From the NCBI RefSeq assembly GCF_963853765.1, contig NC_088856.1:20522001-20586000 (forward strand): 64,000 nt of DNA. Reading direction: 5' to 3'. The notes below the pieces were generated by a model. That model did not search any database. It was not told the origin of the DNA and saw only the letters and a program-made list of their open reading frames with translations. Of the stretch, positions 4,240 through 61,784 are shown in pieces. A program made the position numbers and the translations under genes. The DNA is from Magallana gigas (lineage: Eukaryota). How positions within the stretch are numbered: the stretch's first letter is position 1; the number at the start of each line of letters is the position of its first letter.

Positions 4240-4387
4240 NNNNNNNNNNNNNNNNNNNNNNNNNNNNNNNNNNNNNNNNNNNNNNNNNNNNNNNNNNNNN
4301 NNNNNNNNNNNNNNNNNNNNNNNNNNNNNNNNNNNNNNNNNNNNNNNNNNNNNNNNNNNNNNNNNNNNNNNNNNNNNNNNNNNNNNN
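4240..4387. other. Assembly gap (N run)
   Basis: Run of N characters. Confidence 1.
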
Positions 4388-4702
4388 ATGAATTTTAACT
4401 GAGAAATTGCTATCAAAAACGTAAGATCTCCCTTATTTTAATATGCTTTCAAATGGAATACAAATAAAGAATTTCATTTTCTAACAAATATAACAGGAAA
4501 CTACCTGTGCACAGACCTCATTGGCACAGCCACGCCTAGGTAAAACTGGTTAGCAAACTTGTTTCACATACATGTTTCGTCCCACTTTGATTTGTTGATA
4601 TAAATCCGGGATTGAAAACTGAATTTGGTTTGAGTTCTATAGACGTTATTGATCAGTCGGAACTCCTCGGACTGGTTCCCGAAAGTAAACACGTGAATTG
4701 AA

Positions 4703-4799
4703 CAGGTTGGGACCAATCGCCCAAATGGGATAGAATATCCCAAACGGGTTATTATGACCCAAACGAGCTATATATAGATATCCCAAACAGGCTACATAA
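4703..4799 (+). repeat. Left terminal inverted repeat
   Basis: caggttgggaccaatcgcccaaatggga...gctacataa is the reverse complement of 11633..11729, with 3 mismatches near the inner end. Confidence 0.97.
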
Positions 4800-4881
4800 A
4801 ATTTGGCGGTATATTTTGCACGAGAATTTCCAAAATACGCTTCTTTGCGAGGGATCTGGATTGCTCATAGGGGCCCAAGTT

Positions 4882-4953
4882 TATAAAAGGCAGCTGAAAA
4901 TTCGGTCCTCATAGCCTTAACTGATGCGGAAGTGCGAGAACATAAGGTGAAAA
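4882..4953 (+). promoter_or_regulatory. Putative TATA box and non-coding first exon of the transposase gene
   Basis: TATAAAAG at 4882..4889 and a strong donor GTAAGT at 4954. The acceptor at 5677-5678 lies just before ATG 5681. Confidence 0.55.
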
Positions 4954-5680
4954 GTAAGTCTCTTTTATATTTACGATTACATTTTCCTTGTTAAAGCTAT
5001 TTAAACTTCAGTTAAGCCATAATTACTCTTACCTGCTGAAAAACACGACTTCATTCCGCCATTTTGAAAAGCTTGCATGATCATGTGATCACTAACTGTC
5101 CAATTGAAGAGTGTTTTATAAAATAGGTCATATTTTCAAATAGAATGTATGGTGCGCCATAATGAGAATTATTAAATAATTTTATTAAAACTCTTGTATA
5201 TATGTTTTTGAGGAAACGTATTGAAAAATTTACGGAAATGTTGTTTGAAAGTTGTATAAACGTTTAAAAATCTATGTCACGAATGAATAAAAAGTGATGA
5301 AGGTTAACATACATGCATCATTATATTACGTTACCTATGTAAATATGAAAAATAATGTTCTTAGTGTTAATTTGTCTAAACATATTGCCAAAGTCATTAA
5401 ATCCCTATGAGCATGTTTACTGCAATTTATCTGTGATTTTAAAAATGTAATTCATCAAGATGATATTATGTGCAAGTTTGGAGTTATTAAACGGTACCCA
5501 GTGAATTTGATACTGGTGCATTCTGGTCCGCAATATTTATTGCTGATATAAAGTAAATTATGTTTATAAGATTAACAAATAAGATTGAATACACAATTAG
5601 TTACACATGTTCATTTATGTGAAACAAATTTTTGAGGCTTATATTTACCTTTATCTTATCTAATGATTTTTTATGTAGAT

Positions 5681-7045
5681 ATGCCCCCTAAACGCAAATG
5701 CAGTTGCAAACAGCATGTATACTGTTCAACCCTATTCCCAGACGACGAGGAGATTGTTCAGAGAATATCCGACAAAAAAATTAAAGTTAAAGTCGTTAAC
5801 TTTTTGTTGAAAAGGGAATTTATATTCCCACATTCTACCTTTTTGTGTTCTCTGTGTGTAAAATTTGCTGAGCAGTGTCTTCAGCACGAAGATGAGACTG
5901 AGGAGGCGGCTAAAAAGAAGAAGTTCAGTATTTTGGAGTATTTTGAAGAGTTCCTGGGGGCAGTTTCCAATAATAGACTAACAAGCGATCAGCTGTCTTC
6001 CTTATCATACGCTTTAGGTAATATATCCTCTAACTAACACCTGTAATATTTTACAAGCAACGACGAAATGAAATTTTATTATTTCAAAGAAAAACCAATT
6101 AACTAACTCTGTGTATATATTTTAAGGAGGCAATTATGCATTGGTATTGAATAAATATTTCATACTTTAGGAAAAACACAAACCAAAGCAGTTTACGAGG
6201 ATACTGTGACTTCTGGGAGCCAGTATAAAGATGTAGATTACTTGGAAACGTTCAATCTGAAGGGTAAATAAATAAATTATAGATAATAAACGCACATGTT
6301 CACCCCCCCCCACACACACACACCAACCCCCCCCCCCCCACCCCCACCCCACCCCACACACACACACATACACACTGTTATATTATTTATTGAATATATT
6401 TATATATTATCTATGATATAAATATTTATTATTATAATTGTGTGTCGTTTCAGACTGGTTGCAAGAAAGAAACCATGTTATAGTTAATTTCATCAAAGGG
6501 ATCTGCAACGATGCTTGTGAGGAAATTAGACTAGCAAAGACTGTAGAGTCTATCTACGGGTGTAGAAACAATTCCTTTGTTTCACCAATGTCTTTCTCTC
6601 AAAATCTGCTTGGGTATGTTTAAAATACAGCCACACACACACACACAAGTATTCACGTAATGACTATAATTGCAGTCAAATTACGCCTATTTTATTCAAT
6701 CTACACATTAGTACTGTGTATGTGATGTTTGCATAATTAATTATTTATTCTAATAAATCATTATCTCTATTTATGTTATCTAGATACTACATAACTGGTA
6801 GCAAATCCGCTTTGAGGATAGGGTGTAAGGGCAGTCCATCGGGATCCTACACAACAGTTCAGAACTGGATTTCAGAGCAGAGCAAAGACGCCATAGAATG
6901 CCCCCAAAACGCTGATGTTGTAACATTTTTTGACAATAATCAGGTGATAATAAACATAAACTTTAGTTGCAATAAGCTTATATTCACATATAATTCTATA
7001 TGTACGGTAAACGTTAAGGATTTTGGGGCAAATAATTGGATTAAA

Positions 7046-7129
<84 letters not shown>

Positions 7130-10100
7130 ATACAAGTTATTTGAGTTTGCATATAGTCGTATACGTATATTTACATGTATTTTAAAACAGTATCATATAA
7201 TTTATAATTGAAAAAAAAATATTCCTGTCCAAATTAGGTAATTTTCATAATTTTTTGTGTTGCAACCATAGGTTTTAGAGAAGAAATGGAAGGTGGAGGT
7301 GAATTACAAAGGGAAGGCCAGTGTCGTTACCACCATGGTACATATTATCCCGGACATTGAGAGCAATATTCAACATATTCTGGAACTATCTCCACGACAG
7401 TGGATGAATCACACTAGTGATGGCAAACGAGATACAATTAGTAAAATGAAAGATCTTGATATGATACACTTCGAAACGTTTCGGCACTATAGGTACATTG
7501 TGTTCTATATAAGTAAAATTATAACTCACATTGCATTTATTATCAAATTAAAATTAAATGATAAATTATATGCTGAATAAATATTTTTATAATTTTTTGT
7601 CTGTTTAGAAATGAATTCATTAGAGACAAATTAGAGAAAATTGTTAGCCATCAGGATGACAACGGACTGGACAACATTGATAAGAATTTGCTAAATATAA
7701 CTTATATTACAGCAGAGGAAAGGTACATATTATTTTATTATTAAATAAACGGATTTTTTATACAAAATTAAAATTCGATAAAATTGCATTTTTGTTAATT
7801 TGCAATGATTTGATCATTAAATTTTTTAGGTATTCTTTCATTAAATCTAACGATGGACCAAATCCAACTGTCATCATGGGAGAACCATGTTTCGAAAACC
7901 CCTGTTCTTACGAGGCAGTTGAGAAGGTTTGTAAGTCATGAATCGTTAATTCATCAATCTATTTGTCAACCACTACATGCAGTTGTTAATATTTATTTTA
8001 AATTTATACGCTCTTAGGTTCTTGATCACATTCGAGAGAAGGCGAAGGTGGGTGAGGCGAGGAAATGGACGATGGTTGGGTGTGATGGCCTGCCCTATAC
8101 TCTTGCATCAAGAATCATCGGTTTGTCGCAAATTAAAATACATTAATTTATTAAAAGTGTAAACATAAAAATCACACGAAATCAAAATTGACATCGTAAT
8201 ATATTTTTGTAGAGAACATGTTTACCTGTCCGGATTGTGGCATGGAGTTCATGGATGAACCAGATTTCAAGGAGCACATAAAGAATTACGACCATGCACT
8301 AAACGTCGACATAGAGAAGTGTAGAAAGTACAACGACATTGTCATGTTACCTGGTACATAGTTCTTTGAATTATTTTATAAAACAAGGAAATTTTGTATT
8401 TTTTCTAGTAATCAATAAGAAATAAATACAGCGTTATGCCATATAAAAATGCACAATATTAATTTCAGGACTTGGTCATTATGAGATCAATATGACGAAA
8501 GCCATATTTCGCCTGCTATGGGATGTGATCCTTATAGATCTTGCAAAACTTTTAGGCTTCAATAGCCCAAAAGCACAAGCCTCATTTATGAGCGCAACAG
8601 GTAAAAATAAAATAGTTTTATTTTATAAAAACGAATATTAAAAAAGTTTTGTCCCAACTTTTATCTTATGACATTTATTTTGCAGACCACCACAAAAGCT
8701 GGCAAATTTTTCAGATATTTCTGCAGTCAATGGCTGCAGAGCTTTTGTTGGTATATGTGAGGGATCCGAGTACATCCTCGCCTTCTGTCAGTGGCTTCTA
8801 TGAATGGTATGTTGGGGTTAAAAACCCCAATTATAAGTTTATGGCTGAGGTAGTATTTTCATACTGCCTTGCCCTCCATGTATTTAGAGCAGGGGTCAGG
8901 CGCAACAATTCCACAGCAATTAATGCGTCTAAAACAAAGTTTTCACCATTATTCTTTGGCCTTAACATGCCATTTTACATGGAGACATATATGAGGGACT
9001 CATTTGTTCGAATTCAGTGCCCAAGTAAAGTACGTGGGTTTATTGAGGAACATGAGTCCTACAGAGTTTCTGGCAGTGATGCCAAGGGTGAGGGGGGTGA
9101 TTTTATATTAGAAGCCAAAAACAGGAAAACGAAGATGTGGATCCAAAATGGAGTGCCTGATGAGGAGAAGTGGAGAAATGTTTGTAGGTGCATTGACAAA
9201 CTAGAAAAGGTAACTTCAGCCATTTTGAAATAAAAAAAACCAATAACTCATTTACTTTTTTTATTCTTATCTTTAGCATTATCTTTAGCAATCATGATAT
9301 GGTGAGGGCATTTCCATCCAATTCTGCTCAGAGGTGCTTTGGTTGTGGCTGTAATGCCAACGCACAAAGCATGCACCCAGTACTCGCATGTCTGCTTCAC
9401 CCGCCCACGCTGCGAGACATGTGAACACCCAATCCAGAGAGCCTTGGTATCTTTCCTCCCTTCTCCACAGAATCTACACAGTGTAGAATCTTGAACTGTG
9501 GAGAAGGAGGACTCCGATGTCTGCGTCTCTGTATGGCGCGTCCTGCTCCTTATGGGTGACAACGACAGGGATGTCCTGGGGTCCATTGAGCTTGTAGATG
9601 GGACGTCTTCTTTTTGTTGGGGTCCATCTTGAACATTGATCTTTCCCTGAAATTTATAACATAGGGAATAAAAGTACTCTTTTAATATTAATTGAGTTCT
9701 TTTTTATGACGTTCATACATAAAATATTTATATATGAAATAAAGTATTCATTAATTTATTACCAAGTCAAAATTCACCCCTGCAGACTTGTACACATATT
9801 CTGTCCCTCCAGGGCTCTTTAAGTATAAGACGCAGTCTGCGCCTGTGGTTTCGTGTATCTCTTTTGCCTAAAGTAGATACATGCATGTATATTTTTCATA
9901 CAAATGCATATATATCTTAACATCATTATACATTTCCAATCATAATAATGCGTGTGTTGAACCAAAATTATTGAGAATTGTGTTTTTGAAAAGGGGGGGG
10001 GGGTGCCGCCATTTTTTCTTGGGGTGGGGGTGGCAAAGCCGATTTCCGTTACCTTTTACTATGTCATTTCTTTAACTTTTTTCTGCGATGTTTAATTTAA

Positions 10101-10661
10101 TGAAATAATTTTACAATCGTTTTATTTTTTATTTTTAAACAATTTATTTACAAAACTTTTCATATTTTTGTATAGGTCAGAGGAAACTTGAGTGCTGCTC
10201 TATGCATTTGTGAGCTTGATGCCGAATACGCTTACATGTACAATATTGATTTTGAAATCAATTGTTTTAGACAGTCTATCAGAGAATCAGGCTACATAAA
10301 TGAGCCGTTCAAAGAAAAGAGTCACACGTCTTTTAGTGGGAAATCCTTGGACCGTTCATTGACGGAGTTTCACGTAAACTCATTGCGACACCGCGAAGAC
10401 TTTATGAATTTTATTATCAACCACAGCCTCAGTGACAGAAAAAAATTTCCTCCGATTTTTGTTCTCACAGACGAAAGGACAAAAGCAGAATCCATTGTTA
10501 ATAAAACAAAACCCGAAATTATTAAGATAATTGAAGGTGAACTTGAGGATATAAACAATGAGAAAATCAATGCCGAGTGGAGGAAAGTTAAATCGAAGAC
10601 AAAAGCAGATATTCTTAAATTTTATCATGATGTTTTAAAATCGGAGGGCCGAAATGATTAA
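5681..10661 (+). CDS. Putative DDE-type transposase, 12 coding exons, 855 aa, distantly Academ/Transib-like
   Basis: Phase-consistent GT-AG exons: 5681-6017, 6171-6263, 6454-6613, 6784-6943, 7272-7492, 7609-7722, 7830-7926, 8018-8120, 8213-8353, 8469-8600, 8686-9209, 10176-10661 (2,568 nt, no internal stop). Motifs: FFDNNQ, VGCDGLPY, a C2H2-like CPDC..H..H insertion, PGLGHYE, GGDFILEAKN; N-terminal CxCxxH..CxxC. Confidence 0.88.
7051..7123. repeat. (CT)n microsatellite in a transposase intron
   Basis: Direct reading. Confidence 0.95.
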
Positions 10662-11587
10662 ATTTTTATATGTATATATTGCAATTTTTATGCTGACAAT
10701 TACTTGGAATGTTATTTTCCTTATCACATAATTGTAAATACACCTGTAAAACTTGCAATTAGAATATGTAAATGTTTCACAAATGTAGTATTTTTATCTG
10801 TATATATTGTATGATATTTTAAAAAAACAGTGTGATATGTAAATAATACTAAATATAAACTTTATTTATTTGTAAATATTGTATATATATATAATGAAAC
10901 ATCACATTATGTTACATCATAATATCATCATATTATATAATCAAAATTGTATATTTGTAAATATAAACTTTATTTATTTAATTTAATTGAAAACAATTAA
11001 TAAAACATATTCTTACTTTCTCTAGAAGAGTGTTTTTTCTCTTAAAAAATGATTGGCTAACGCTCCTTGATCCAACTTGGGATGGAACCTGTCTCCTGTT
11101 CTTCCCAAGAGTTAGATTAGAAACTTTTCCGCTTCTGCCATTTTTTCTCTGTTAAAAAATTTCAATGCAAATTTAATATATTAACGTCATATTTTATAAT
11201 ATAGAACGAAATCTAATGTTATTGGCGCATTTCATTTTCCTTATAAATTAATATTTTATTTTAGTCCTTCTGGTGCTCCATACAATAAGCTCTAAATTTC
11301 AACCACACCAAAGATCATAGCCATTTTCTGATTGGATAATTTGATCTCGCGAGAAGTTATTGTTTCAATATGTCTTCCATGTGTTAGTGTCGAAGAAAAT
11401 TACTTCAACTTTTGTTGATATTAGAACATAAAGGTAAGTTTAAAGAAAAACAGTTAAGGTCACCGTGCAAAAGGACTGACTCATGTTTTAGTAAATAAGT
11501 TTATGAAGTGAATAGGGATGAAAAATACGTAGAATTTAACTCAATCTACAGATAATGACTCAATTTCCTTACCAATGTACTCGACAT
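9248..11587 (-). CDS. Transposon-encoded MADS-box-like + PHD-finger protein, 4 exons, 211 aa
   Basis: Phase-0 GT-AG exons 11587-11573 (MSSTL), 11148-11017, 9867-9778 and 9646-9248. The spliced peptide SFFKRKNTLLEK|AKEIHETTGADCVLYLKSPGGTEYVY matches the MADS/SRF pattern. The C-terminus CRFC..WIGCSH..C..WVHALC..WKCPHH is a PHD finger. Confidence 0.82.
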
Positions 11588-11632
11588 CTTGCGGAAACAA
11601 GTCTTCTTTTTCTTGCAGAAAAAAAAACCGCG

Positions 11633-61655: not shown

Positions 61656-61784
61656 NNNNNNNNNNNNNNNNNNNNNNNNNNNNNNNNNNNNNNNNNNNNN
61701 NNNNNNNNNNNNNNNNNNNNNNNNNNNNNNNNNNNNNNNNNNNNNNNNNNNNNNNNNNNNNNNNNNNNNNNNNNNNNNNNNNNN
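61656..61784. other. Assembly gap (N run)
   Basis: Run of N characters. Confidence 1.

Follow-up and report, generated by a model that had tools for sequence, protein, structure and literature searches.

A stretch of 64,000 nucleotides from Magallana gigas (contig NC_088856.1, positions 20,522,001 to 20,586,000 of the forward strand), here called the window, contains an intact cut-and-paste transposon of about 7 kb with two convergent genes. The plus strand encodes a DDE-type transposase, and the minus strand encodes a protein of about 216 amino acids (aa) with a MADS domain and a PHD finger (MADS-PHD). These genes are interleaved at their 3' parts: coding exons of each gene lie within an intron of the other, on opposite strands. 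As judged from related elements, this layout is a real, inherited gene arrangement and more than chance. The explanation that best fits the evidence as a whole, and that is considered probable, is an inherited interleaved arrangement that most likely began as a tolerated rearrangement, with the antisense overlap as a by-product.

Interleaved genes and their conservation

The order along the plus strand is transposase exon 11, the antisense PHD exon, the antisense exon with the second half of the MADS domain, transposase exon 12, and the antisense exon with the first half of the MADS domain (Table 1). Transposase intron 11 hosts the MADS-PHD exons 9646-9248 and 9867-9763, and MADS-PHD intron 2 hosts transposase exon 12 and its 3' flank. 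Because the 3' parts are interleaved, each product is obtainable only by splicing across exons of the other gene. A first-pass annotation of the window had proposed interleaved convergent genes with introns at 9210-10175 and 9868-11016, exon 12 at 10176-10661, and a MADS-PHD stop 38 nt from the transposase donor; all of these positions are correct.

The transposase gene has 12 exons and one open frame of 855 codons. Its 11 introns and the 3 introns of MADS-PHD are all GT-AG. Ten of the transposase introns measure 85-328 nt, compared with 966 nt for intron 11, and read-through of the intron 11 donor would stop at TAA 9231-9233. A (CT)n microsatellite (window 7049-7125) lies within intron 4, and a C/CA-rich low-complexity run (window 6296-6370) lies within intron 2.

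Searches with exon 11 return 709 homologues at E<=0.001. The RefSeq model P0166 from Saccostrea cucullata aligns in a single BLASTP high-scoring segment pair with 63% identity over 656 aa, covering window residues 198-852. P0026, a protein of 982 aa from one uninterrupted open reading frame (ORF) on a metagenomic contig, is collinear with window residues 101-818. In the intronless relatives L030/P0026 and L031/P0084, the exon 11 homology passes into the exon 12 homology with no more than one residue inserted. In model P0012 from Tegillarca granosa, the exon 11 homology extends to residue 522 and the exon 12 homology starts at residue 523. Since homology is contiguous across the junction in P0012, P0166, and the intronless L030 and L031, exon 12 is, by sequence comparison, the true C-terminal part of this transposase family. 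The same homology supports the in-frame KLEK|VRGNL join of the first-pass annotation as the right one. All four copies of the element have an open exon 12, conserved at 99-100%. An AlphaFold2 model of P0166 (663 aa; 36 homologues) is confident throughout, with a predicted local distance difference test score (pLDDT) of 90.8 and a predicted template modelling score of 0.90. The exon 12 part of this model mostly has pLDDT values of 85-97.

The exon 11/12 junction sequence was not found in JGI metagenome contigs, and neither the transposase nor the MADS-PHD spliced junction was found as a retrocopy in the oyster genome. When the PHD exon and exon 12 served as queries, all matches were unspliced ORF calls on Logan contigs. 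Of the sequence words of 8400-11700, introns included, 85-93% occur in the RNA-labelled runs X1-X4; unspliced RNA, antisense RNA, or DNA carry-over are possible sources, and nothing is drawn from this result.

The joined MADS-PHD exons 2 and 3 match the Pfam family SRF-TF (PF00319) with 27.8 bits (gathering cut-off 26) and E 1.7e-6. The match covers residues 31-69 and profile positions 9-47, and it crosses the exon junction. Neither exon gives a Pfam match singly, and the ORF of the distant L030 does not reach the PF00319 gathering score. Both halves of the MADS domain are conserved, the second half (exon 3) in 9 lineages, and the core KRKxxLLxKAxE...G..Y.Y is kept. This domain, with its score above the gathering cut-off and its core pattern, resembles animal SRF and MEF2. 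Unlike SRF and MEF2, the oyster protein is small, transposon-borne, and fused to a PHD finger, and its N-terminal basic arm is broken by an 11-residue insertion. Exons 2 and 3 are without an in-frame ATG, and for this reason the start is placed in a 15-nt exon (11587-11573).

The PHD finger matches PF00628 with 25.9 bits (cut-off 24) and E 1e-5. Its ligands C-C-C-C-H-C-C-H (C4HC2H) are conserved in 14 sequences, the last ligand being His instead of Cys. The PHD exon has no specific RAG2_PHD match, and an Atlas search found generic PHD clusters only. The PHD partner adjoins the transposase in 14 of 15 loci, including the metagenomic L030; the fifteenth, on the L031 contig (3.7 kb), is too short to tell. 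The MADS-PHD protein is probably a DNA- or chromatin-binding helper of transposition.

Profile searches of six-frame translations place the interleaved order in three further diverged lineages of the same genome, namely C6:37.06 Mb, C4:48.85 Mb, and C5:41.36 Mb with C1:35.95 Mb. The positions of DNA and protein hits suggest that C6:17.24 Mb is a fourth further interleaved lineage. The same order occurs in elements of Tegillarca granosa, Saccostrea cucullata, Mytilus edulis, and Pinctada imbricata. Published gene models from four bivalve genera (P0166, P0012, P0168, and P0176) splice the transposase across the antisense exons. Identity of exon 12 between interleaved lineages goes down to about 38%, and the arrangement is therefore old or widely spread. 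Conservation of the interleaving in related elements, which the first-pass annotation had named as a check, is thus found in diverged oyster lineages and four other bivalve genera; it is not universal, as tail-to-tail relatives exist as well. Existing gene calls at the Tegillarca, Saccostrea, Mytilus, and Pinctada loci cover the transposase and leave out the MADS-PHD exons, which matters for annotation. The Saccostrea cucullata element (L032, JAVVLV010000566.1) is located inside an intron of a host NIDO/EGF-domain gene.

Origin and possible role of the interleaving

Plain tail-to-tail relatives are found at C4:14.1 Mb, at C10:0.8 Mb, in the pair C4:18.06 Mb / C9:18.03 Mb, and in the metagenomic L030. 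In the oyster elements among them, exon 12 adjoins exon 11 or is separated from it by a short gap, the complete MADS-PHD gene follows further downstream, and the stop codons are 30-177 nt apart. The intronless L030 also has its convergent PHD gene downstream. The C4/C9 pair has terminal inverted repeats (TIRs) that are 99-100% identical, 5-bp target-site duplications (TSDs), and an open PHD exon and main exon 12 match. Because of these near-identical TIRs, TSDs, and open frames, both layouts appear recently mobile in one genome. In tail-to-tail elements, gaps of about 90 and 220 nt at the exon 11/12 junction and of about 250 and 380 nt at the junction of the MADS halves would fit introns that were already present there.

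The tail-to-tail layout is read as ancestral because an intronless ancestor cannot have been interleaved. The interleaving is read as derived, and also as dispensable, because tail-to-tail relatives, some apparently young, persist in the oyster genome. In the ancestor, the genes would have lain tail to tail, their stops separated by 30-180 nt, and introns would already have been in place at both positions. A block would then have been relocated into an existing intron of the other gene; exon 12, for instance, could have shifted by about 0.6 kb into the MADS intron. Alternatively, a duplication could have been followed by complementary loss. The interleaving would since have been inherited as a tolerated frozen accident.

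Four points weigh against this explanation. Both splice joins rest on homology, splice-site consensus, and gene models of other groups. The maximum-likelihood tree of exons 10-12 needs 3 changes, an approximately unbiased test of one interleaved clade gives p = 0.069, and a single frozen accident is not settled by this tree. A remnant of a duplicated block was not found, and the rearrangement route is pure inference. Finally, the spacing from the exon 11 donor to the PHD stop is 31-39 nt in four lineages, oyster, Saccostrea, and Mytilus among them, and -8 nt in Pinctada. Such recurrence could point to selection on the overlap instead of neutrality.

The 38-nt gap between the MADS-PHD stop and the exon 11 donor contains no AATAAA, ATTAAA, or common variant. 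The first poly(A) signals lie inside exon 11. Among these is the AATAAA at 9044..9039, which the first-pass annotation had given as the first one downstream on the minus strand and which is indeed the sole canonical signal within 9250-8800. Because of these positions, the predicted MADS-PHD 3' untranslated region (UTR) is complementary to about 100-190 nt of exon 11, including the codon of the probable catalytic glutamate E662. If both promoters fire, the pre-mRNAs would be mutually antisense over about 2 kb (~9.0-11.0 kb). The Saccostrea and Mytilus elements likewise have no signal before exon 11, and an overlap is predicted. The Tegillarca element and the C5/C1 lineage have a poly(A) signal ahead of exon 11, with gaps between donor and stop of 91 and 445 nt. 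For this reason the exonic overlap is not a conserved feature of the interleaved state. The sense-antisense overlap of the first-pass annotation is thus predicted for the oyster family, Saccostrea, and Mytilus, and it fails in Tegillarca and C5/C1.

These features may also be read as a selected self-regulating device. The interleaving or the close 3' abutment would then cause polymerase collision through convergent transcription, and the MADS-PHD 3' UTR, paired with exon 11, would produce double-stranded RNA (dsRNA) that feeds silencing by small interfering or Piwi-interacting RNA, so that the partner throttles the transposase or alternates with it. The lack of a poly(A) hexamer in the 38-nt gap, the same placement of signals in Saccostrea and Mytilus, and the kept spacing all speak for such a device. 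Stops also lie close together in the tail-to-tail relatives, so overlapping antisense 3' ends may be common to the family. Against such a device, the early signals and wider gaps of Tegillarca and C5/C1 remove the exonic overlap, and both architectures look recently active in one genome. Self-regulation is considered unlikely on balance.

A bolder proposal treats the interleaving, together with the pairing of the 3' UTR with the E662 exon, as a built-in switch based on convergent transcription and dsRNA. The partner and the transposase would limit each other, and the element would keep its own activity in check and give rise to its own small-RNA silencing, with selection for the switch across pteriomorph bivalves. 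A linked possibility is that the Chapaev-type pair works like RAG1-RAG2. This proposal is speculative and considered unlikely.

It is very improbable that the gene models are wrong, with a transposase that ends at 9233, an exon 12 that is a relic or separate gene, unjoined MADS halves, and a PHD-only protein that starts at ATG 9586. Database models of the relatives P0018, P0021, and P0022 do end shortly past the exon 11 homology, and the MADS-PHD start hangs on the 15-nt exon. This reading is contradicted by the open and conserved exon 12 of all four copies, by its homology to the C-terminus of intronless transposases within one ORF, and by its confident fold in the Saccostrea homologue. It is also contradicted by the MADS match, which exceeds the Pfam cut-off only when the exons are joined in phase, and by the conservation of both halves in several lineages.

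The first-pass annotation had further proposed that the interlock couples the two genes genetically. In one version of this idea, the interleaving would be kept since deletion derivatives cannot spare one whole gene, which limits one-gene 'cheater' elements; the 3' halves share a 1.9-kb stretch, and any deletion within 9210-11016 that exceeds an intron strikes both genes. Such coupling is very improbable as an explanation, because one TIR pair already links the genes, intron-confined deletions (within 9248-9867 or 10176-10661) remove exons of one gene and leave the coding exons of the other intact, short MITE-like derivatives that lack both genes abound, and tail-to-tail relatives that appear intact and recently mobile persist. 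A tolerated rearrangement stays the preferred explanation.

The presence of tail-to-tail and interleaved forms in one genome, both seemingly recently mobile, is a natural paired experiment. It bears on a possible regulation of a eukaryotic transposon by antisense overlap and convergent transcription, and on how exons are reshuffled between two genes without loss of either.

Transposase kind and known two-gene systems

The transposase belongs to the CMC/Chapaev-Transib kind. The 24 full-length homologues that were aligned all keep D, D, C-x2-C, H-x4-H, GxGHxExN, and DFxLExxN, with the invariant residues D323, D521, C538xxC541, H555x4H560, and E589/E773. Their counterparts in the window transposase are D247 (exon 4), D417 (exon 8), C434xxC437 and H450x5H456 (zinc motif, exon 9), E481, and D658/E662. 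E662 (9111-9113, exon 11) is the probable catalytic glutamate, because the catalytic glutamate of RAG1, P element, and Hermes falls at DFxLExxN by the ranges of the structural alignments.

Pfam assigns the transposase core to DUF6589 only, in the homologues, and a single-exon Pfam search did not identify the transposase. Structural alignment of the P0166 model (VIA-align) gives P element, Hermes, ISCth4, RAG1, and HzTransib at Z 7-9.6, which are not separated from one another. Foldseek against the PDB returns weak E-values only for the transposase model, and a profile of the 24 homologues finds only generic zinc fingers among PDB sequences. The N-terminus of three distant homologues (P0049, P0084, and P0110) contains PF12560 (RAG1_imp_bd, Chapa). 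Exon 1 of the window has no PF12560 match at E<=1, and its CxC..H...H..C..C pattern is seen by eye only. The Chapa domain is the N-terminal importin-binding region of RAG1 and is otherwise confined to Chapaev groups and TransibSU (PMC4411706; bioRxiv 10.64898/2026.01.24.700457).

CA..TG termini and a zinc motif after the second D are in the description of the CMC-Transib clade (PMC12730594). The oyster element shares the 5'-CA..TG-3' termini, and its DDE transposase family has the C(2)C and H(x4)H zinc motif past the second D. The Chapa zinc domain in distant homologues and an RNase-H-type fold, which aligns with RAG1 and HzTransib at Z ~7, are further likenesses. In contrast to the H(x4)H motif of the clade, the histidine pair of the oyster transposase is Hx5H. 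TSDs are 2-4 bp in CMC and 5 bp in Transib (bioRxiv 10.64898/2026.08.26.747230). The oyster TSD of 5 bp differs from CMC and is as in Transib/RAG.

The oyster element is a variant of known things, namely two-gene TIR transposons and interleaved gene pairs. It resembles TransibSU/ProtoRAG, with RAG1-like and RAG2-like Kelch-PHD genes, and PIF/Harbinger, with a transposase and a Myb-like protein, in that one TIR pair encloses both a transposase and a small partner of the DNA- or chromatin-binding type. Likeness to RAG1-RAG2 extends to the convergent genes, the PHD finger at the end of the partner, and the TSD length. In contrast to the Kelch-PHD and Myb/SANT partners, the N-terminal domain of the oyster partner is a MADS box. 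To our knowledge, interleaving of the exons of the two genes is unreported for TransibSU/ProtoRAG and PIF/Harbinger. A targeted literature search found nothing relevant on a MADS/PHD partner in Chapaev elements or on TIR transposons with MADS-box/PHD genes. Two-gene DNA transposons are a model for the origin of RAG1-RAG2 and for the recruitment of DNA- or chromatin-binding helpers by transposases.

Nested and interleaved gene pairs of animals are reportedly described in the Drosophila genome re-annotation by Misra et al. in 2002 and in a review by Kumar from 2009. The oyster pair is similar in that exons of each gene lie within an intron of the other on opposite strands. It differs in riding on a mobile element, in being copied with it as a whole, and in its conservation across bivalve orders among diverged element lineages.

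Termini, copies, and neighbourhood

The element has CAGG..CCTG termini and TIRs of 97-102 nt (inverted repeat 102 nt) that are 96% complementary. Seven different 5-mers (TTGAA, TTCAA, TGTAA, CTAAA, GTAAA, TTCTA, and TTAAA) flank ten insertions. The TSD length is set at 5 bp because the five bases abutting the termini are duplicated in every insertion and differ between insertions. The 10-mers CCCAAAYGRG of the TIRs are candidate protein-binding sites. The palindrome CTATATATAG may be a TATA box from which each gene is transcribed inward; its right-TIR copy is about 70 nt upstream of the MADS-PHD ATG. The TIR of the C6:37.06 Mb lineage partly retains the 10-mers and does not retain the palindrome. 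A role of the palindrome as a MEF2-type MADS site was considered and is not relied on: it is not kept in the TIRs of other lineages, its chance expectation is estimated at about 7%, and it could equally be a TATA box.

Table 1. Features of the transposon (window positions, except for the short TIR pairs)
Feature	Position	Strand	Remarks
Transposon	4703-11729		autonomous cut-and-paste TIR transposon, intact, ~7 kb
Left TSD	4698..4702		TTGAA; identical 5 nt at 11730-11734
Left TIR	4703..4799	+	starts CAGGTTGGG
Left TIR 10-mers CCCAAAYGRG, x3	4720, 4739, 4758		19-nt period
Palindrome CTATATATAG, left TIR	4768-4777
Transposase exons 1-5	5681-6017, 6171-6263, 6454-6613, 6784-6943, 7272-7492	+
Transposase exons 6-10	7609-7722, 7830-7926, 8018-8120, 8213-8353, 8469-8600	+
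Transposase exon 11	8686..9209	+	174 codons; invariant GGDFxLExxN motif
AATAAA, first canonical after MADS-PHD stop	9039..9044	-	inside exon 11; sole AATAAA/ATTAAA within 9250-8800
Variant hexamers TATAAA/AATATA	9109-9102	-	inside exon 11
Transposase intron 11	9210..10175	+	966 nt, aag|GTAACT ... tatag|gtc
MADS-PHD last exon	9248..9646	-	linker and PHD finger; stop TGA 9250-9248
MADS-PHD exon 3	9763..9867	-	C-terminal half of MADS (SRF-TF) domain
MADS-PHD intron 2	9868..11016	-	1,149 nt, aaa|GTAAGA ... ctttag|gca
Transposase exon 12	10176..10661	+	161 codons plus stop; conserved C-terminal domain; phase 0, KLEK|VRGNL
AATAAA, sole canonical one on plus strand past transposase stop	10999..11004	+	13 nt before antisense MADS exon 2
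MADS-PHD exon 2	11017..11148	-	N-terminal half of MADS domain (...SFFKRKNTLLEK)
MADS-PHD first coding exon	11573..11587	-	MSSTL, ATG TCG AGT ACA TTG|GTAAGG; 46 nt inside right TIR; placed by sequence reading alone
Right TIR	11633..11729	-	element ends CCCAACCTG
Palindrome CTATATATAG, right TIR	11655-11664
Right TIR mirrored 10-mers, x3	11703, 11684, 11665
Right TSD	11730..11734		TTGAA
Short TIR pairs, examples	C7:34534433-34534829, C8:50772115-50772547, C2:47116445-47116868, C6:41023840-41024554

Four full copies are 98-100% identical: C4 (the window), C6:41.56 Mb, C9:45.66 Mb, and C1:4.48 Mb. Three of the four are open in all 12 + 3 tested coding exons; the first MADS-PHD exon (15 nt) is too short for a copy-by-copy test of the open frame. 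Among the four copies, variable columns amount to 0.56% of coding compared with 1.21% of non-coding sequence, with window places 10115-10155 excluded from the statistics. Only the C9 copy (L003) has a 5-nt insertion, TTCAT, in exon 11 (window 9192^9193). The insertion lies 17 nt short of the exon 11 donor and puts exon 12 out of frame. Being as long as the TSD, it could be an excision footprint.

The C1 copy contains an insertion of about 1.7 kb (L004/L005, C1:4476709-4478406) at the equivalent of window ~10795. This place serves as transposase 3' flank and MADS intron 2 alike. The genome also has many related TIR pairs that are 350-700 bp apart and 76-93% identical to the element TIR. These short pairs are probably non-autonomous derivatives similar to miniature inverted-repeat transposable elements (MITEs).

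Elsewhere in the window, a plus-strand ORF of 513 aa at 30-1571 has a reverse-transcriptase domain (PF00078, E 7e-24) and is probably a fragment of a non-LTR (long terminal repeat) retrotransposon that enters from the left window edge. Runs of N, from an assembly gap or masking, occur at 4240-4387 and 61656-61784, the first about 310 nt left of the transposon. On the minus strand, an exon of a host gene near the element (15739-15897) contains an LSM/Sm domain (PF01423, E 1.6e-11), which by eye resembles small nuclear ribonucleoprotein F.

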